From Bugula neritina (lineage: Eukaryota > Animalia > Bryozoa), in contig OZ037767.1 in NCBI GenBank assembly GCA_964035545.1, positions 13,997,801 through 14,061,800 on the forward strand: a stretch of 64,000 bases of DNA, given 5' to 3'. A program made the translations under genes and the position numbers. The notes beneath the pieces are model-generated. The model saw nothing but the letters and a program-made list of their open reading frames with translations. It was not told where the DNA came from and ran no database searches. Positions 6,501 through 56,300 of this stretch are shown in pieces; the first letter of the stretch is position 1, and each line of letters opens with the position of its first letter.

Positions 6501-9500
6501 AAGACAAACCTGTAGAAGCAACTGAAGCATCCACGCAGGAATCTGCTGCTGCCGCGTCAGCAGACGCTGTCCAATCTAAAGACGATGAACCAGAAGCTCC
6601 GACAGAGTCAGCTGAGGTAGAGCTGAGAATTGAAGAACCCGGAGATAAGGAGGCAGCTGGTATGACTGCTTTACTGTCTTAACTTTTGACAGCTTTTCAA
6701 AGTAGACTATTGGGTTGTGCCATTTAGTCCGGTGATGAAATGAAACGGTTCGCTTGGGCGAGTATTAATATTCAGATTGAAGTAAAAAGGTCATGCTTTG
6801 AAAGTGTAACATGAATAAGACAAATTATTCTTAGAGTTATGCATCGGTCTCCATATGTCATAGCAATTAAAACTCGAGCTTGATATTGAGGTTTCAAGTA
6901 ACGTTTTGTAACTTTAACCCGAGTTTCAAAGTCAATGAAAAAGATTTTAATGCATCACTGAGTTATTAGTTTTGAAACCTAAGCTTGCCGTTTCTTTTTA
7001 AGGTCAGTAGATTTGTGTGATACTTTGTAGTGTTAAATCCTGTCAGCTTGTGATAATATTAATCATCATTTTAGAAGGCAGCTCGGAGCCTGTAAAAGAA
7101 GAAACTGAAGCATCAGCGGAAGGAGGGGATGAGTCACCGTCAGCTAAAGAGGTTCAGAGTTTGTCTGCTTCTATGTTGTCCGCTAGTTGTGCTCCAGAAT
7201 CTAGTTCTGAGCAAATAATGGAGGGTTGCACAGTTAAGGCTGAGCCAGCCGAACTGGTGGTAGATGAAAACACAGAACCAGTTTCTGTATCCTCTCCTTG
7301 CTTACAATCTGCTGATTTGCCTTTGCCGTCTGCTGATGGCGCTGGGCAAACAAATTCTAACTCTAGTTTAGATGCTAATTGTAGTAACATGTCACTAGCT
7401 TCTTCTGCTAATGCACTGCTTTCTAATGATTTGGCTAATTCATGTTCTCAAACAAATATAACTGCTAATCCTGATTCTCAACTCGCTGATGGTGGGCTTC
7501 CGGAAACCTCCATTGAAAACGATGTTGAAGCCGCTCACTCACAGTCTGAAACTGAGCTAAATATTCCGAATTCCGATGTTGGTTTGCAAAGTCCCGAAGT
7601 TTTGGACGGAGAAATATCAGTTTGTTCAGCTGCTGAAGAGGTTGTGATTGATGGCGGTGAGCTTTCCGTCTGTTTGACAGAAGAAAATAATGCTCCGCCA
7701 AATGTGGGGACATCAGCTACACCATCAGTTGACAATGCTCCGCAGGTAGCCGTTCAGGAAAACACACCGGGTGATGAATTGAATAAGTCTGATGTTTCTG
7801 GTGTTGAAAAGGCTGTTAAAGTAGAGGAATGCGACAGTGCAAAGCTTGAAGACGTTTCAAGTCAACAAGAGCCAGAATCAAAAAGTTTGCTTGACACCAA
7901 AATATCTGGTTCCATTGTTGTGGAAGGAGAAGCCCCGAATCTGTCTCCTGTTCTTGACTCTCAGGAAGATTCGAAAGCCACAGAAGAAGGTTTGCCTGAA
8001 GAAGAGTTTGTGGCACAAAACAGTAAGAATTCTACGTTGACAGAGGCATCTGAATCTCAAGATGGTGACTGTTTTGAGAAAGATGATGCAACATGCGACA
8101 AGCCTTCTGTAGTACAAGAAGAATCTTCTCCTGCAAATGTAAAAACTGAGATTTCTGAAACGGAAAGTTGCAATACTGTTGATTTGGCTGATGATTTGAT
8201 CTCCGAGAGTATCACAGTTCAGCATACTGAAGTGTTTGTTCAAAGATCATCTCAGGACCCTGTATCCATGGAAACAGCTGACGAAGTGAAATCAGAAGAT
8301 AGTGATTTGGACCATAATCAGGATTTGCCTCTTTCAACAGAGCCACTTTCTTCTCAGGAAAATGAAAGCAATGAGCAAACTTTGGATGGCGATAAAAAAG
8401 ATGAAAGCATAGAGGAATTTGCAGAGCAGCTGGTGGATGTGGAAGCTGTTGGTAAGCAACCAATAACTGAAGAGACAACTTTGCTGGAATTCGAAGATCA
8501 GGTTTCTACTGGTTCTACGGAGAAGAACGAGAGTTTCATTACAGGCATTGAGACAATGTCTGAAGAAGGAATATGTAATGATGAGGCACTCTCCATCAAT
8601 GACAATTCCCAGCTTTCAGGTGATGCAGATTCTGTAGAAAAGGCAGCTTCTACTGATGAGAAAGGTGATAACCTGGTTGCTTCCGAAATTAATCAAAGTA
8701 CAAGTTCTTTAATCGAAGAATCTGACGTCTTGCAGTCAAATTTGAGTTCTGTAGAGGATGATGGTCTCACAACTGTAGAGGATGTTGGTCTCACAGCTGT
8801 AGAGGATGTTGGTCTCGCACCTGTAGAGGATGTTGGTCTCACAACTGTAGAAGATGTTGGTCTCGAAGCTGTAGAGGATGTTGGTCTCACAACTGTAGAG
8901 GATGTTGGTCTCACAGCTGTAGAGGATGTTGGTCTTGCAACTGTAGGGGATGTTGGTCTCACAACTGTAGAGGATGTTGGTCTCGAAGCTGTAGAGGATG
9001 TTGGTCTCGAAGCTGTAGAGAATGTTGGTCTCACAACTGTAGAGGATGTTGGTCTCACAACTGTAGAGGATGTTGGTCTCACAACTGTAGAGGGTGATGG
9101 TCTCGCAACTGTAGAAGATGTTGGTCTCGCAACTGTAGAGGATGTTGGTCTCGAAGCTGTAGAGGATGTTGGTCTCACAGCTGGAGCCGAAATTGTGCTC
9201 TCTGGCACCATAGATTGCAAAACTGAAGACTCGTCAGAAGTTGCTACTCATGCTGTATCTCTCGACTCTGAAAGCGATAATGCTGATGACTCAGAATTTG
9301 TGTCAAATGGCTCTCAAAAGGTTGGAGTTGTGTGAATTTTAGCAGTGTGACCCCCTTTACGCTGTTCCCAACCACCAATCAGATTCTCATCAGTTGTCAG
9401 CATTCAAAATGTTTGTGGCATTTCACAAAATGTTCTGACCAAGTAATATGCCCTCTAAGCAAAAAGCTCCAGAATATTTTGTTCTTTCTGCAGGTACAAC

Positions 9501-35829: not shown

Positions 35830-36340
35830 TGGGGCACCTTCCTAAAACTGAACGAGTCTGGTAACTATGAATGTTATTTTGTATTTGATTAAAACTCTCA
35901 ATAAAAGAAGTGTGGCTGCTGCCTGATAAAAACTTTAGCATCAGGGACATTTTGGCATTTCTGCGCCTCAATTCCAGAATTTCTAGCTCTAGAGAAATTC
36001 TCCCTTCAGTAACGCTATTTCTGCCCTAATACCTAAAATAAATCTAATTGCCTTTCTCTGGACGCCTTCTAGCAATGAAACCTGTCTTGCTAGATGGGGG
36101 TCCCAGACCTCACACGCATATTCCAGCAGTGGCCTACACAAAGTGAGGTAGGCAACCCGCTTCACCCTCCGTGGGGCATCAAAGAGCACGTGTTTAATCA
36201 TACCCAATCTTTGGCTAGCCCTAGCTGTTATTGTCTCTATGTGCAAATCCCAACTAAAGTTATTTGAAATAAAAACACCAAGGTATTTAAAACTCTTCAC
36301 TAAGGCTAGTGGTATGTTGTTTAAAAAATATTCAGGACTA
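35830..36340 (-). mobile_element. Degraded non-LTR retrotransposon (CR1/L2-like) ORF2 C-terminal fragment
   Basis: KYLGVFISNNFSWDLHI...AYLTLCRPLLEYACEVWDPH...LEGVQRKAIRFI is the typical post-RT region of CR1/L2-group LINEs; truncated. Confidence 0.85.
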
Positions 36341-37468: not shown

Positions 37469-37475
37469 TATAAAA
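37469..37475 (+). promoter_or_regulatory. Candidate TATA box (TATAAAA) of the secreted-protein gene
   Basis: gTATAAAAgg lies ~110 nt upstream of the ATG G|gtatgt first coding exon. Confidence 0.5.
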
Positions 37476-37584
37476 GGACAGCAGAACCTTGTCTTGTCCA
37501 ATTAGCCTCCTGCATGCTTTCCAATAGAAGTTTGGTTTTCTTGTTTCAAAGCTTATAGTCAAAATATATTTCTTAATTTTTGAA

Positions 37585-38159
37585 ATGGGTATGTACTTTT
37601 ATTTTTTATGGAAATTTCTGAACAAATCTTTTAATATATATAAGCAATTAAACATTTTTCTTATTTAAAAGTCTGTTGAGATTATTATTGATTTATTTAT
37701 TTCTACTCACTAATCTATTTGTCTTCAAAAGCATTGATGCAAATTGCGTAGACATTTATTAAGTTTATGCTCTATACATTACTTAGAGGATAGAAAACCA
37801 TGCATGCATGCTATATGTTTCAAAATTATAATCTATATTATCTAAGTTTTAATGTAATTATGGCTTTTCAAGGAACAATTTGCTAGCAACATTTACCAGG
37901 GTTTTAATTTTGGCAATTATGCAGGCAGTGTATCAAATAGAAATAAAGTTTAACTAAACATCCCAGGGGGCTGGCATAGCTTGTTTTATGAAAGTTTTCT
38001 TATTATTGATTTGTTATGTCTTAGCTGATTGGCTGTCTTTGAGTCTATTGATTGCTGTTTGTGGCAGCGCTCTACTCAGTAAGTACGTCAGCATTGCTGC
38101 TCCAGCTTCTTCACTTGTGGGGTGAGTTGATAGACTTAGAATATTATAGAAAATGTTTA

Positions 38160-38246
<87 letters not shown>

Positions 38247-40965
38247 TATATATATACATATTCCATTTTTAGATTATACAATAGTCTAATAATAGATCTT
38301 AAAATATTATTTTATTATATTGTAAAACATATACTCAATTGTTATAGATACTCATATATTTAATGCTTGCTGCTTAGTAAAGAGATATGCGGTAGTATAC
38401 ATTCTATTGAAAATTTCAACTACTTAAGTTTTACTCAATCAACTGAAATAAGTTGACTTGAGATGAAAATAGAATTGCCTGACCTTCATGTCATGAAAGC
38501 AAGCATTTTAACATTGAAAGAGTATTTTTATATTGATTTATAGCTACAAAAGTATTTTGCTTGTTTAAACTTGTAAAAATTATTAATAAATTATCTTGAA
38601 AACTCTTTGCATAAAGTACTTTATACAACTTTTATATGCTTTATAAAAAACTTAGTTACCTATGGCAAATATGTTCATTAAGTTAATACTCTGTGGAAAT
38701 GAAGTATGACTATATAAAATTATATCTAATAATTACTGATTGGCTGTAGGGATGATGCCGACAGCTCATGCCAGGTTCTGAGACACAGGAGAGAGGCGTT
38801 CAGCAGCTCCTCAGTGAACTCTGTCAGAGATTTGCTGGTCAGAACCACCCAGTGTAGAGTTAACTTAGCTGACAGCATGAGAGTTTATGTGAGTCCTTCT
38901 TCATTCTATGTTATATTTTATAGTCTATTTATGCTCTATATTCTACACTCTGTATTATATTATATATAACTATATTTTCTATTTTTTATTCTATATCAAA
39001 TATTTTATAATAAATATCATGTAATATTCTTATATTCTATATGATATATTTCTTATTCTATATTATGCATTGCATATCACGTATTGTATATTCTATTATT
39101 TATATATTTTATATCATATGTTAAACATTATATAATTTCTATTTATGTTTTGTATTGTATACTTTTTGTTATATAGTATAATTATACTAAAATATTATAC
39201 ATTATATATTCTTGAATATATTTTATTTACTTTATATATTTAATTTATATATACTTTATGAATGGCATTTCAAAGTATAAAATATCTGAGCAAAGTTTTT
39301 TCATACTTCAACTAGCGGTGTTTTCAACTTGCAAAAAATACTACTATAGCTGCAGCAAAAGAATCTCTTAAAATAAAATTCTAGTACACTATAATATTTT
39401 ATTATATAACAAAACGATTTACCTATGAACAAGATAATCTTGTAAATTGCTTGTGTCTATAAATATATATATATATTGTATTTTCGTCAAAATTCAACCA
39501 CAATGCCTTAATTATTTGCAAAGTTTGTGAGAAGATTGTAACAAGAATTTCTTACTAATTTAGAGAACGGCATATGAAATGAGTAAAAGCGACTATGACA
39601 CACCCACCTGGAGAGAGGAAGTGTGTCAGTTTTCTCATATGACTCATCTACTGGTAAGGGAGACAATTCTATTTTCTTGTGATCAATCAACTTCAGTTAT
39701 AGTGACCAATCACAGAAGAAATGAAAATAAACTTGTGTACTATTGTAACTTAATATGATTTACAGCCACCTAATATGATCATATTATGCAAAAATTAAAA
39801 ATTATCATTTCTAGTTTTATTGTGAACAGAACAATGTTTCCAAGTTTTTTTGCTAACTAGAAAATCAGAAAACTAAATTTAAATTTTGGAAAAGTTGCAA
39901 CAATATTATTTTTGTGTTTTTCTCAGAGCTCCCACACACAGGTTATGCGGGCACTTCAAAATTACTACTGCAAAGTACAGAAAAATGGACTCATCACCAT
40001 TTCTGCTCGAATCTCGAGTGCTACCAGCAACACAAACACGCAAACTCGACTTTTGAACTCTCTCATTGATGTCGTCTGCGGCATCAGCAGTTCAGATTGT
40101 CACAACTTTACCTGTGGCCATATTCAGGTATATAAATATAAAACTTATGAGACTTTATATATAGTCACTATCCCTGTGAGAAACCCCTGATGGAGAGGGT
40201 GATATTTTTTAAAGTGGGTTAAAGACTTGCACATTCAAATGTGGCACAGGAGAAATTATATGACTGAATGCTCTTCCTAACATCACCATTAGCCTGCACT
40301 GGGGTTCAAACCCATGACTTTGTTTTTACTAGCAAATGCTCTAACCCCTAGACCACAGCTAGGTGCTCCCTTAATTTATATCAAGGTATATACTATATAA
40401 GTTGGTTATTAGTTACTATATATAACAAGTGTACCTTTATTTAGGTAAGCTTGGTAAATGGGGCAAAAGTTAGCTAATTAGTAAATGGGGCAAAAAGGTT
40501 AAATCTAGTCTACATATTTATACATTTTGCTTTAAAAGTTAGTAAATTATTTAGTCTAAAACTGGTAGAAGGCTTTGTTCTATTTTACTGTTGAAATAAT
40601 AAATTGTATGATAGATTATAAGAACAAGATTCTTGCAAAAGGACAGAATTAACTTTTTTTAATTTAAATGCTTAAGTTAGCAAATAAATTGTGCATTTTT
40701 AATTTTTTACTTTTTAATAATAAATATTGAATATGAACATAGAACTTCTAAGTACAGAAGCTTCTTTCCATATAATTAAGTTGACCGGAGAATGAATTTC
40801 AGGATATATGATTATATACAGTACGTCAATTAGTATATAAACAGCTTTATCCTTCTGTTTCAGAGTTCAGAAGCTCCGAGTCTCTTAGTATCCTCTGGTT
40901 ACACTAACATTCTTCAGCCTCTGGACAAAACTCTCTTCTGTATTTTCTCTCGACTGTACAATTAA
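37585..40965 (+). CDS. 180-aa secreted pre-pro-protein of unknown family (helical-cytokine-like architecture); exons 37585-37588, 38025-38121, 38750-38888, 39927-40127, 40864-40965
   Basis: GT-AG introns with phases 1,2,0,0 give an uninterrupted frame: MADWLSLSLLIAVCGSALLSKYVSIAAPASSLVGDDADSSCQVLRHRREAFSSSSVNSVRDLLVRTTQCRVNLADSMRVYSSHTQVMRALQNYYCKVQKNGLITISARISSATSNTNTQTRLLNSLIDVVCGISSSDCHNFTCGHIQSSEAPSLLVSSGYTNILQPLDKTLFCIFSRLYN; exons are GC-richer islands in very AT-rich introns. Confidence 0.75.
40152..40371 (-). mobile_element. SINE family 1 copy
   Basis: Match to the other copies. Confidence 0.8.
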
Positions 40966-43431: not shown

Positions 43432-46400
43432 ATGCGTGGTTCTAAAAAACTACCTCATTTATTTATTGCTGGAGCCATGGTGTCCATGCTGTGTCTATAT
43501 TTATTATATTGGAGAAATGAATCGAGTGATTCTTCTTCTAACCTAAAATTTCTGAAACCTGACAAATCTGTAGCAAAACCAAAACAATCACTCCTATTTC
43601 AAAAACCAGCTAAAGAATTCCACCAGCCGGCAGATGCTCAATCTCAAACACAAAATACTTTAACTCAAACGGAGAAGAAAAGAACTCAGTCCGATCTGAA
43701 AGCAGCAGCTATGTTGAAAGAACCAGTAAAGGTAGAATATACAGTCTCTCCATCTGCACTCCTGTTACAAATTATAAAAAAACTCGTGCAAGTTTATAGT
43801 CACTAACTCTGTGAAAAACCCCTGATGGAAGGGTTTTTGTAAAATGGGCTAAGGACTTATAATTCATGTGTGGCACAGGAGCAATTATGACTGGATGTTC
43901 TTCCTAACATCACCTGAATAGCCTTTACTGTAGTTCGAACCCATGAATTCATGTTTACTAAGCAGATTATCTAGCCCCTAAACCACGGCTGCTCTCTGAT
44001 ACAAATTCCTACTTGTATATATATTGATTGCTATACTGAGTTTAAACAAGTTTATACTGATATACAAATCCTGAGCTTCTTTTTAGACTTTGGCCTCACC
44101 ATGATCTATTATTATGTCAATTTTATGTACTATGATGACTACTATATAATAGTCTATGAAATATATGATATATGTCATACCATATGATATTCTATATTGT
44201 AATGGTTATCAGAGTTACCTCCTCATTATATCGTATTTTTATTTTTGTTCTTAGTCTTATAATGTAGACTACTTGTTCGTGTAAATTGACTTCAACTGAA
44301 GTTTGGATTATCGGAGTTCCGAATGACCGATCGTCGGCCGAAATGTCAAAACTCCGACATTCCGGCCGACGATCGGTCGAAGCTTCTAAAATAGGCCTCT
44401 GTGTTAGTATATAGGAAAGTGAGTTCCAGCAGTAAATCAGTTGAAGACTGGAGCTTCTATAGGAAGGATCTATTTACAGTACAATAAATACCACTTTACT
44501 CACACTACACAATATTATCTTATCTCTCACTACACACAAGAAGTTATGTTCCCTGTCTGATTTATTCAAACTCCACAAGTTACTGCAATATTACATAGTC
44601 TAGTATATGAAAATATTAAAATCAGAATACAACAGAAGAAACTGTTGTTGTAGTATTAGGTTAAGTATTCTCTGTTTTGTTCACACATCTTTTCAGCTGT
44701 TAATATTTTAATGCTATTAAATGATGCAACTCCTAAAATCTTCCCCACATAGTCCATTGTACCCATCGTATGATGTGTTCCAACTTTCTTTTTAGATAAT
44801 ATATCAAGATTTATCAACTTGCCCAAAAGCCAGCTATCTAAATGAGTATAACGCCCATTGTTGGATGTCAGAGATCAGCAAAAAAATACAGGACCAACCG
44901 TAAGAATAATAATCAATATCAGTATTGATTCTTTTTCTGGAATTGTCCAATAGCTGCCTATTTACTCCTTGAATGTATTGCTTCTAATTTAATTCACCAT
45001 AGTTTGGAGTTTATGCAGCAGTTGGTAATCAAACCCAAACTTGTGATTGAGAATCATGCGTTCTACAACTGAGCTATCAGCATCAACAATGTTATTAATA
45101 TCAATGTAGTAAAGAAATACACCTTAACACTGTTCTGGTACATTTTGCAAACAAAGAGTTGTACCAATTTTGCAGTTGCTTAAAATCAGTAAATATCAAC
45201 TACTGATTCCGATGCTGACTTTGTCTCAAGTGTTTATGTAAAATAATTGCCACCACCGGGAATCGAACCCGAGTCTTCTGGCTTGCAAACAAGTGTGCTA
45301 CCATTACACTACGGAGGCCACTGGGTTTATTGAATACATTTATAGGGAATCAAACAGCATGTACTGCTTTCCAAACCTCCACCTTATTGGAATGAGAAAG
45401 AGCGCCACAAATGACTTTGCCAAGTGGTTAAAATACGATCCACAGATAGTTAAAACTCAACAGGTTCACATCTTTATCATAGGCTAATTATTACTAGAAG
45501 AATATTATAGCACTATAACTATATTATAATATTATAATACTATAACTATATTCATATCTTTTTAATTTTGCTTATTATATATTTCATTTTATTTTAAATT
45601 AATTTGTTGTCATTATAATTAACACATTTAAAGATATAATATCTATTTAAGGTATATTAACTACTATTAGGCATATTATATTTTAAAAATCCAAGCTCAG
45701 CAAAATTATGCAATATGAGAAAACCAAGTTTTGTTAGCAACTGATAAAGCTTTTTAATGAGTTTATAACTTCATTCGAATATGCATCTGATAATTGATTC
45801 GACCGACAGGTGCTGTTGTCTAAAAAAATATTTAATTTAATGCTTTTCAAGCCTGGTCATTCTAATCATTGTGTGATTTATTTTTTTATGTTTACACAAT
45901 GATTGCTATTACACAATTTTTAACATTTCTTTAATTTATAATTCATGATGCTTATCATGCTATAGTAAAGTTTAGACTCAAGCAACATTAGAATATGCAT
46001 AGATCTGCATTTAAAAGATCATTTATACAAATTAAAAATATCATATCGCATTTTATTGTGTTTTAAAATTTGCCACGCTAGAAGATCTAAATATGAAATG
46101 TTACTATGTCACACAGGATTATTGGACAAACGAAAAGTTTACTTGCCCACTTGAATATTTCAAAGGAACTATACAAAGGAAAGCTAAACCAGGTGAAAGT
46201 CACATAAACGTCGGTCCAGGTATATAGCTATACTATATATAGTACTATATAAATATATAGCTATACTTGTACTATAAATATATAGCTATACTTGTACTAT
46301 AAATATTTAGCTACATGTATAATAAGATATCGCAAAAACTATAGAGTTCATGGGTTTAAACAATAATAACTCAAAGTTGAATTATTAGCCTTGTTCAATA

Positions 46401-53366: not shown

Positions 53367-56300
53367 ATGCCTGGTTCTACAAAACCATCTCATTTATTTG
53401 TCAGTGGAGTCATGGTGTCTATGCTATGTTTATTTTTATTATATTGGAGAAATGAACCGAGTGATTCTTCTTCTAGCCTAACATTGTTTAAACCCAACAG
53501 ACCTTTAGTAAAACCAAAACAATCGATCTTACTTCAAAAATCGGCTGAAGTTTCCCACCAGTCTACAAATGTCCAATCTCAAATGCGCAATAATTTGGCT
53601 CAAACAGAGACGAAAAGAACTGAGTCACGTCCAAAAGCAGCAGCCGTGTTGAAAGAACCAGTAAAGGTGGAGTATATAAATTACAAATTACAAATTATAA
53701 ATGAGCTCCCTTATAATATTTGTTATTATGCTGCATGCATGATTTAAATGGGTTTACTAGTGTTAAACCCCTGACCTTTTTTTTGCGTTATGCTTAAACT
53801 TTCTTTTTGTAAACCTCACAACACGCGGCATCATATGAAAAATAACAATTGTGTAAGGCCATTGTTTATAAAGACATACTATTGCATTGAAATATGTAAT
53901 ATATACTATATGATATATAACATGAATTATGTGATATATAATACATATTACGTTTAGCAATCTAATACATTAATGCCATATAGAGTGCAGTATTTTCAAA
54001 GTGCAACAAAGAATTTTTTAGTATAAAATTGAGTATATATTACTGTTTTGCTGACCAAAACTGTAGGCTTCTATAATAAGCAGTTTGTACGCAGAAGCCT
54101 AAATATTTTATAATCACTACTCCTACATTACCTTAGATATTATACGAAGATTTGTCAACTTGCCCAAAAGCAAGCTATCTAAGTGGATATAAGGCCCATT
54201 GCTGGATGCCAGAAACCAGCAAGAAGATACAGGACCAACCGTAAGAGTAACAGTCAATATCAATATTATAGTATAGTGAAGGTAGAAATACACTTTAACT
54301 CTGTCGTGGAAAATTTTATGGGACAAAGAAAGCAGTTTTGCAAACTAGCAGTTATCTAATATCAAGAATTTTAACTTGTTTTCTTTTTGCAAAGCTATAC
54401 TGCTATAAACAATGCCAATTTTGTCTTAAGGGAATATTTTTTAGCGAATCAAACATCATGTACTGCTTTCCAAACCTCCACCTTATTGGAATGAGAAAGA
54501 GCGCAACAACCGACTTTTCCAAGTGGTTTCGCTACCATTCACAAGTAGTCCATACTCAACAGGTACCCTTATTATGTGCTGAAGTTTTTAACCGTAACTT
54601 TATTAAATTAACTTATACATCTTAACATATTCCATACTATAATATTTTTTTATAAAATGTCACACAGGATTATTGGCCTAGCGAAAAGTTCACTTGCCCA
54701 CTCGAGTATTTCAAAGGAACTATACAAGCTAAGGTTAAACCAGGTGGAAATTACTTGAACATCGGTCCAGGTAAGACGAACATGATTTCTATAGTATATG
54801 GCTCTATGCATAAAACACTAAAATAATTGTAGAAGTCATGCCATTAAACGATAATAACTCAAGGTTAACTTCTTAACATTGCTTAATAGCTCAACATAAC
54901 TCTGTAAACAAAGGAATTTTCCAATAGAAAGTTTTTCATTTCAATAATAGTACTCATATATGCATTTTTTTCACTATATGTCTACCATATTGCTATTTCC
55001 TTGTCAGTTTTAAAATTGACAAGGAAATAGCAATTGTTTCACCTTATTTTTCTGTATAAGGTGAAACAAAAAACTTAACAAATGCAGGCATCTGTTTTTA
55101 CCTGTACAAATACACATTATTACACAAAGCATACGTGATGAAAAGTTACTGAGAACTATTAAAAGCAAAGTTTTATTGTCATTTTGCATTTGTGATATGC
55201 TGTTTGTTTATGCTCAAGTTTAATCAAACATTATTGAAATAAATGTACATCAAGTTTCTTTGTGTTCCATAAAAAGCATTTCTTGACATTTATAAAATGG
55301 AAACCTATTTTATTTAAACTATACATGCATTTTATTATAAAAATCAGTAAAGTCTATAAATTTTACAGGTAAATTAATATCATTTTTATTCTGTGTTTTA
55401 AAGTTTTAAATAATAGTTATAATTCTACCTACTCCTATGGCTTATGCCAGCTAATTTTCAACTTAGTGTCCGTATATATTGGATTGGTTAATAAATATTC
55501 GTATTGTTAAGTAAATACAATTTTTCTATTTGTCAGGGAATATAGCAGTATCTAGAAAACACTGGTCTAATGACACTCATATGAAAGTGGTAACAGCTAC
55601 ACAACTGTTAGGATTCATGGCCACACCTTCTACTAGATTCTACATACAGTTGAGAAATCCTACAGACAGGTGTGTTTATAAGTAACAGCTTTATATATAA
55701 ACCAAGTGCGAGATGTTATAGCCACTGAGGTTTAATGCTGTGCCTTTTTTCTCATCATATATTTTCTTAAAACTCACCATATGGTCATCTTTGTTTAAAT
55801 AAAACACCAAGTTTGACTTTTCTATTTTAGAGGCATTTCTTACTTGTTCCATTGGCATAAACTTGGCCTTGTACATAAAGAACTTACTCTTGACCAGATG
55901 AACGCCACTTTCGTAGACAATGTAATACGAAGGAATCTTCTAGAGCTCAAAGCCTGTCTAGACAAGCTGGGCGAGTTGGGTTGTTTCTACTCATCTAACC
56001 CAAAGGATGGTAAAATGGAGGTATGCAGTATCACATATTATTATAGCCTGCAAGTTTAGGTCTCAAAAGAAAAGCATTTTTGCATGCGAAAATTTATATT
56101 TTATTGTTTTGATTTAAGTTGCTATAAAATATCAATTATTATTTAAATGATATTATTTGTCGAAAATTACAGAGGGCTTCGTTTTCAGAAGTTGTGATAT
56201 GAGGCAAAATATACATATGCACATTGAACCAAAATTACTGACATGTAATTTTATGCTTTTAGGCAATAATTTTAATTTCCTATATTTTTGTTTCACAGTC

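Follow-up and report, generated by a model that had tools for sequence, protein, structure and literature searches.

A putative secreted, convertase-processed orphan protein and its diverged paralogue in the bryozoan Bugula neritina

Class I helical cytokines, which include the IL-6/G-CSF and growth hormone (GH)/prolactin types and leptin, are small, secreted proteins with amphipathic helical segments and few disulfides. Their genes consist of several exons, with phase-0 introns where the mature protein is encoded, and their sequences are very poorly conserved. Sequence searches detect them with difficulty, and the first coding exon of some is short (PMC2654155). A second group of extracellular factors, comprising neurotrophins, TGF-beta, PTTH/Trunk and insulin-like peptides, combines a signal peptide, a pro-segment, an R-x-[KR]-R site and a mature domain of about 110-130 amino acids (aa) that contains Cys. 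Several of the features just named for each group recur, some of them as predictions, in a gene of the bryozoan Bugula neritina that lies in a 64,000-nucleotide (nt) stretch of contig OZ037767.1 (positions 13997801-14061800; hereafter the window). With a probability of about 0.6, the gene encodes a secreted, convertase-processed, ligand- or hormone-like extracellular protein that belongs to a two-member orphan family.

The original prediction of a five-exon gene for a 180-aa protein, made from the letters of the window, was reproduced in its exons, GT-AG borders and intron phases. The five joined forward-strand exons amount to 543 nt, which correspond to 180 codons and a stop codon, with phases 1,2,0,0 in a local frame check. 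Each exon has canonical AG/GT borders, and the reading frame is uninterrupted throughout. The window is AT-rich and eukaryotic, with a GC content of 26-42% in 2-kb windows; the GC fraction of the exons is 0.40-0.50 compared with 0.20-0.30 in the four introns. On the sequence evidence, the gene is real and apparently uncatalogued.

A search of the genome (216,009,554 bases in 321 sequences) with the translation of exon 4 identified one other locus, at C3:12582596-12582763 on the reverse strand (E 2.6e-4), where C3 designates contig OZ037767.1, so that all C3 coordinates refer to the chromosome that carries the window. This locus is part of an intact paralogue (C3:12581905-12585518, reverse strand) located 1.4 Mb from the gene and encoding about 184 aa, with an RVRR site, five Cys residues and three N-x-S/T sequons. 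Exons 2-5 are collinear at the paralogue, all on one strand, with AG/GT at equivalent codons and with the same phases, 2,0,0. Identity between the two genes amounts to 24% in exon 3, 32% in exon 4 and 39% in exon 5. In the mature parts, 41 of the 137 aligned columns are identical (30%), and all five Cys residues of the paralogue are aligned with Cys residues of the gene. Common to both are a YYC motif, a C-x6-C-x3/4-C cluster that ends in HI(A)Q at the splice donor, and the C-terminal sequence GYxxILxPLxxTLFC, which is followed by a stop codon within about 10 codons. The RVRR of the paralogue is one residue out of register with the RHRR of the gene, and a Ser-rich stretch then follows. Strong divergence combined with retention of the Cys residues, the RxRR site, the C-terminal motif, the intron phases and the position of the stop codon indicates that purifying selection has long acted on both copies. 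Two old genes that are both constrained at the protein level would be expected to look like this.

What unconstrained copies look like is evident from the dead members of the family. The first, at C3:9662888-9663700, is a copy of exons 4-5 of the paralogue in which the frame is shifted, a Cys is changed to Arg and the acceptor is lost. The second, at C3:9627000-9634810, has retained exon 3 with RARR, its intron is broken up by about 7.5 kb, and no exons 4-5 were found near this exon-3 copy at about 9.635 Mb. The third, at C3:27154404-27154595, was considered as a processed retrocopy; this was rejected, since the relic matches exon 4 alone and contains two TAG stops. In genome-wide searches with exon profiles, matches were confined to the gene's own small family, which from these data comprises, on a single chromosome, two intact members and no fewer than three fragments. 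Exon queries gave no significant similarity to two further loci of this chromosome that are candidates for unannotated genes of secreted helical proteins, so that kinship with these was rejected.

The presence of these fragments raises the possibility that the gene itself is a silent or decaying copy, or even a series of open exons that line up by chance. Pseudogenes do arise in this family, no RNA run is among the sequencing runs that contain the stretch, and the product is missing from a collection of 1.84 billion predicted proteins. Arguing against such a non-functional locus are the four or five exons in intact frame with canonical splice sites and the diverged yet intact paralogue, which has preserved the same Cys residues, cleavage site, C-terminal motif, phases and stop position. 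Moreover, the true dead copies have the frameshifts and the lost acceptor that the gene lacks. Of all the explanations considered here, this one is the least probable.

The N-terminus of the predicted protein is consistent with the hydrophobic signal peptide that had been proposed. Residues 4-20 of the 180-aa product form an uncharged hydrophobic stretch of 17 residues, which is present with either of two possible start codons (see below), and the N-terminus of the paralogue contains an uncharged hydrophobic run of 21 residues. A plausible signal cut, placed by eye according to the -3/-1 rule, would be after Ala17 of the 180-aa model. The pro-region ending in RHRR also agrees with what was found in the family, as R-x-R-R is kept in three copies (RHRR, RVRR and, in a decayed copy, RARR) within surroundings that diverge. 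The R-x-[KR]-R motif is therefore conserved at the putative border between pro-segment and mature part, as expected of a convertase substrate, and each of the two intact proteins contains it at one site only. None of the other dibasic sites is conserved; the RR and KR in the last exon of the paralogue are not common to the gene. With a single conserved RxRR and no other conserved dibasic site, it can be argued that the active product would be the whole 132-aa domain rather than small peptides. Matches above the cut-off to the convertase domain P_proprotein occur at several loci of the genome.

The 132-aa remainder after RHRR contains Cys residues at positions 69, 95, 131, 138, 143 and 173, with spacings of 25, 35, 6, 4 and 29. 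It is basic (pI about 8.9), has a mass of roughly 14.6 kDa and carries one N-glycosylation sequon (N-F-T); the mature part of the paralogue has a pI of 8.7, and N-x-S/T sequons are present in the mature parts of both. The six Cys residues previously assigned to the mature domain are thus correct for this copy but do not describe the family. Because the paralogue lacks counterparts of C41 and C69, the family framework consists of five Cys residues.

From this architecture we infer secretion, cleavage, disulfide formation and a role as an extracellular factor. A precursor of 180-191 aa would enter the secretory pathway, where the signal peptide would be removed. The short pro-segment of about 30 aa would then be cut off after RHRR by a proprotein convertase of the furin/kexin type. 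The protein released would be the basic domain of 132 aa with its N-F-T sequon, two or three disulfides and a conserved amphipathic C-terminal helix; the sixth Cys, beyond the five that are conserved, would be particular to this copy.

Homology and family searches were run exon by exon, and the joined protein was used only for the local frame check and for composition, pattern and pairwise alignment analyses. A two-sequence profile of exon 4 yielded no matches at E <= 0.001 among 1.84 billion representative proteins. As the gene's own product was likewise unmatched, it must be absent from that collection. Pfam contained no family for three exons of the gene; the only match was that of exon 4 of the paralogue to RIH_assoc, which was below threshold (E 0.059; 13.7 bits compared with a cut-off of 28.5). 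Comparison with PDB sequences gave chance-level matches only (E 0.59 and 1), the ESM Atlas provided no usable match, and none of 90 pattern matches in JGI metagenome contigs was confirmed. The original prediction, in which no family was recognized, is borne out by these searches, and the gene is on present evidence an orphan, lineage-restricted gene of Bugula neritina without detectable relatives elsewhere.

Hand-written patterns for known frameworks, among them IL-6/G-CSF, somatotropin, cystine-knot and saposin, were compared with both proteins. The IL-6/G-CSF and somatotropin signatures were absent, as was cystine-knot spacing (CxGxC, CxC, CC), and neither protein had a known antimicrobial or toxin Cys framework. 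Saposin-like proteins have six Cys residues in a framework of the type CxxC ... Cx5C; there is no CxxC in either protein, and the conserved Cys residues are five in number.

These results bear on a reading in which the gene encodes a secreted effector that serves in antimicrobial or other defence, resembles a toxin, or is a component of the extracellular matrix or of an adhesive, and that is made as a pro-protein and activated by a convertase. In favour of it, both copies have a basic mature protein, and searches beyond the genome yielded no conserved relatives. The family also appears young and of fast turnover, with two intact genes only 30% identical and several dead copies, which is typical of defence and effector genes. 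Against an effector are the lack of both a known antimicrobial or toxin Cys framework and a Pfam match, and the size of the protein, which at 132 aa and with its long amphipathic helices exceeds that of most such peptides; nor does anything link the protein to the matrix. We consider an effector unlikely, although it is the most probable of the alternatives. If the protein is secreted and processed as proposed, a role in signalling is somewhat more likely than one in defence.

The original prediction went further and suggested a helical cytokine or hormone, the receptor of which might act through JAK/STAT. In its broadest form, this reading assumes a four-helix bundle, of class I or another class, that binds a gp130/Domeless-like receptor. 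Several amphipathic segments had been noted in the mature part. A hydrophobic-moment scan showed helical periodicity in four segments, at about residues 52-66, 79-93, 118-128 and 157-175, and strand-like periodicity at about 64-76 and 100-110, and the Chou-Fasman helix propensity is only about 1.0. AlphaFold modelled the exon-5 fragment (33 aa) as one long helix with a predicted local distance difference test score (pLDDT) of 79. For the exon-4 fragment (67 aa, alignment of two rows), the pLDDT was 54, and the model consisted of helices at residues 2-11 and 36-53 and strands at 13-17 and 23-27. The two strands form a low-confidence beta-hairpin around YYCKV/ITISA, between the helices. Four helices are possible, and a four-helix bundle can be regarded as a candidate fold only.

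In addition to the four periodic segments and the helices modelled in the two fragments, the size of the protein and its secreted, processed nature would suit a cytokine, the genome contains exons with STAT_bind (at C4:3.71 Mb and C5:11.2 Mb), and both the short first coding exon of some helical cytokines and the difficulty of detecting these proteins by sequence could be accommodated. Arguing against a cytokine are the lack of any match for any exon in Pfam, PDB sequences or the Atlas, the missing signatures, the hairpin between the helices of exon 4 and the low helix propensity. Jak1_Phl and IL6Ra-bind were not detected in an exon-wise six-frame search of the genome, which is weak for split genes and in which the controls were without matches. 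Nor does the gene structure lend the support that was drawn from it, as there is doubt about the tiny phase-1 exon and the paralogues have no more than phases 2,0,0 in common. The AU-rich 3' region claimed for the gene proved to be unremarkable for an AT-rich genome: ATTTA occurs once in its 610 nt, compared with a window mean of 2.5, so that the 3' untranslated region (UTR) is not enriched in AU-rich elements. The tiny exon and the 3' end are both weak as supports. The cytokine label amounts to a conjecture, and we consider a helical cytokine or hormone quite improbable. Less probable again is a specific variant, namely a bryozoan-specific pair of four-helix cytokines, linked into a disulfide dimer via the fifth Cys and signalling through an unrecognized receptor on the STAT pathway.

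We therefore return to the secreted, convertase-processed, ligand- or hormone-like protein, against which several points have to be weighed. Its role is read from architecture alone, and the N-terminal signal peptides of both genes are assigned by a hydrophobicity heuristic only. The conserved Cys residues are odd in number, which renders the disulfide scheme ambiguous. A single sequencing run contains the stretch (contigs, kind unspecified), and no RNA run was found to contain it. The remaining points concern the exon model, the weakest part of which is the doubtful 4-nt coding exon 1. The start codon is ambiguous, and a candidate extra exon in intron 3 may alter the product.

The tiny phase-1 first exon of the original prediction does exist in the sequence as ATGG with a donor. 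In its favour are the gaaATGG context, the GTATGT donor and an upstream TATA box, which is present as had been reported. It has a rival in the in-frame ATG at 37988, from which there is no stop before exon 2, such that exon 2 could be longer and contain the start of translation. The arrangement is the same in the paralogue, where an in-frame ATG precedes the acceptor by 4 codons. Weighing further against exon 1 is an upstream ATG at 37514, if transcription begins about 30 nt past the TATA box. The paralogue has no strict counterpart of exon 1; its sole candidate for a tiny exon, with a weak GTGATA donor, is found 3 kb upstream. No conserved promoter or exon 1 was found between the two paralogues, the introns and promoter regions of which do not align. 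The N-terminus is signal-peptide-like under both start models. Within exon 2, there is a perfect consensus donor, GTAAGT, at 38079, the use of which would break the frame.

The candidate extra exon (39564-39653) has no stop codon, is in phase 0 and 43% GC, and is flanked by a pyrimidine-rich acceptor with TACTAAT and a GTAAGG donor. It is a single-copy sequence genome-wide, and a search of intron 3 of the paralogue revealed no counterpart. Possibly it is an exon, alternative or particular to this copy, that would add 30 aa and one Cys to give a product of 210 aa; it may also be a relic. At the 3' end, the first AATAAA implies a 3' UTR of about 590 nt. The positions of all these elements are listed in Table 1.

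Table 1. Elements of the gene and of its immediate surroundings, in window coordinates
Feature	Position	Strand	Remarks
Candidate TATA box, TATAAAAG	37469-37476	+	116 nt 5' of the ATG at 37585; no conserved counterpart in the paralogue
Exon 1, putative coding part (ATGG, donor GTATGT)	37585-37588	+	Good context (gaaATGG); predicted
Alternative start, in-frame ATG, open into exon 2	37988-38024	+	12 extra residues, MKVFLLLICYVL
Exon 2: hydrophobic signal segment, beginning of pro-segment	38025-38121	+	Donor GTGAGT, phase 2
Exon 3: end of pro-segment, RHRR, Ser-rich mature N-terminus, first amphipathic segment	38750-38888	+	
RHRR codons	38781-38792	+	Residues 45-48
Candidate extra exon (cassette?)	39564-39653	+	90 nt, in frame; acceptor ttcttactaatttag, donor gtaagg
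Exon 4 (67 aa): YYC motif, C-x6-C-x4-C cluster	39927-40127	+	Most informative exon
Short interspersed element (SINE) copy in intron 4	40160-40375		From genome search
Exon 5 (33 aa and stop): C-terminal helix with GYxxILxPLxxTLFC	40864-40965	+	Conserved
First AATAAA 3' of the stop codon	41551-41556	+	

The introns contain repetitive sequences. A GC-rich patch in intron 4 was considered as an exon and rejected, as it is the SINE listed in Table 1. A genome search with this element, which has a tRNA-like part, gave 3474 first-look candidates, and the 40 copies that were scored, besides itself, are 80-84% identical. Intron 4 of the paralogue has a GC-rich patch soon after exon 4 as well. Intron 2 of the gene contains a long (AT)n/(TA)n microsatellite (window 38150-38255), and (TA)n runs are also found in the region of the paralogue.

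Other features of the window lie outside the gene. About 1.3 kb upstream of the TATA box, on the reverse strand, is an open reading frame (ORF) that resembles a reverse transcriptase fragment of a non-long-terminal-repeat (non-LTR) retrotransposon (35989-36300). Downstream of the gene, two clearly paralogous forward-strand ORFs (43432-43806 and 53367-53747) each encode a membrane anchor with a short cytoplasmic tail and a stem. They resemble first exons from genes for type II Golgi enzymes and point to a tandem duplication. At 45248-45318 on the reverse strand is a tRNA-like sequence (Rfam tRNA, 48.8 bits) for which ARAGORN names no anticodon and which may be the head of a SINE or a degenerate tRNA. 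Farther away, at 7017-9335 on the forward strand, a 772-aa acidic, Ser/Glu-rich ORF with a GC content of 40-42% ends in about 25 tandem VEDVGL(T/A/E)(T/A) repeats in its C-terminal part.

As a phylum, the bryozoans have received little study; work on Bugula neritina concerns larval settlement and bryostatins. The extracellular signals of lophotrochozoans are largely unknown, and according to a review of annelid and bivalve immunity many cytokine-like molecules are still undiscovered (PMC9756803). As a candidate ligand, the predicted protein is concrete enough to be expressed and assayed. Should the pair turn out to be helical cytokines, they would be among the first ligands of this kind to be defined in a lophotrochozoan outside the molluscs. 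At present the gene stands as another taxon-restricted gene for a secreted protein, putative by sequence, and the immediate value of the analysis is in annotation, as it supplies the gene and its paralogue and warns that the first exon is uncertain and that there may be an additional one.

The comparison with the known systems can now be drawn. A pro-segment with a furin site, as predicted here, is not typical of class I helical cytokines. The Bugula protein differs from them further in that it matches none of them by sequence, profile or signature, in that the phases conserved between gene and paralogue are 2,0,0, and in the possible beta-hairpin of its fragment model. Compared with neurotrophins, TGF-beta, PTTH/Trunk and insulin-like peptides, its pro-segment is very short, at about 30 aa, and the spacing of its Cys residues is not that of a cystine knot. 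Unlike the convertase-processed growth factors and prohormones, its mature domain is predicted to be largely helical rather than all-beta.

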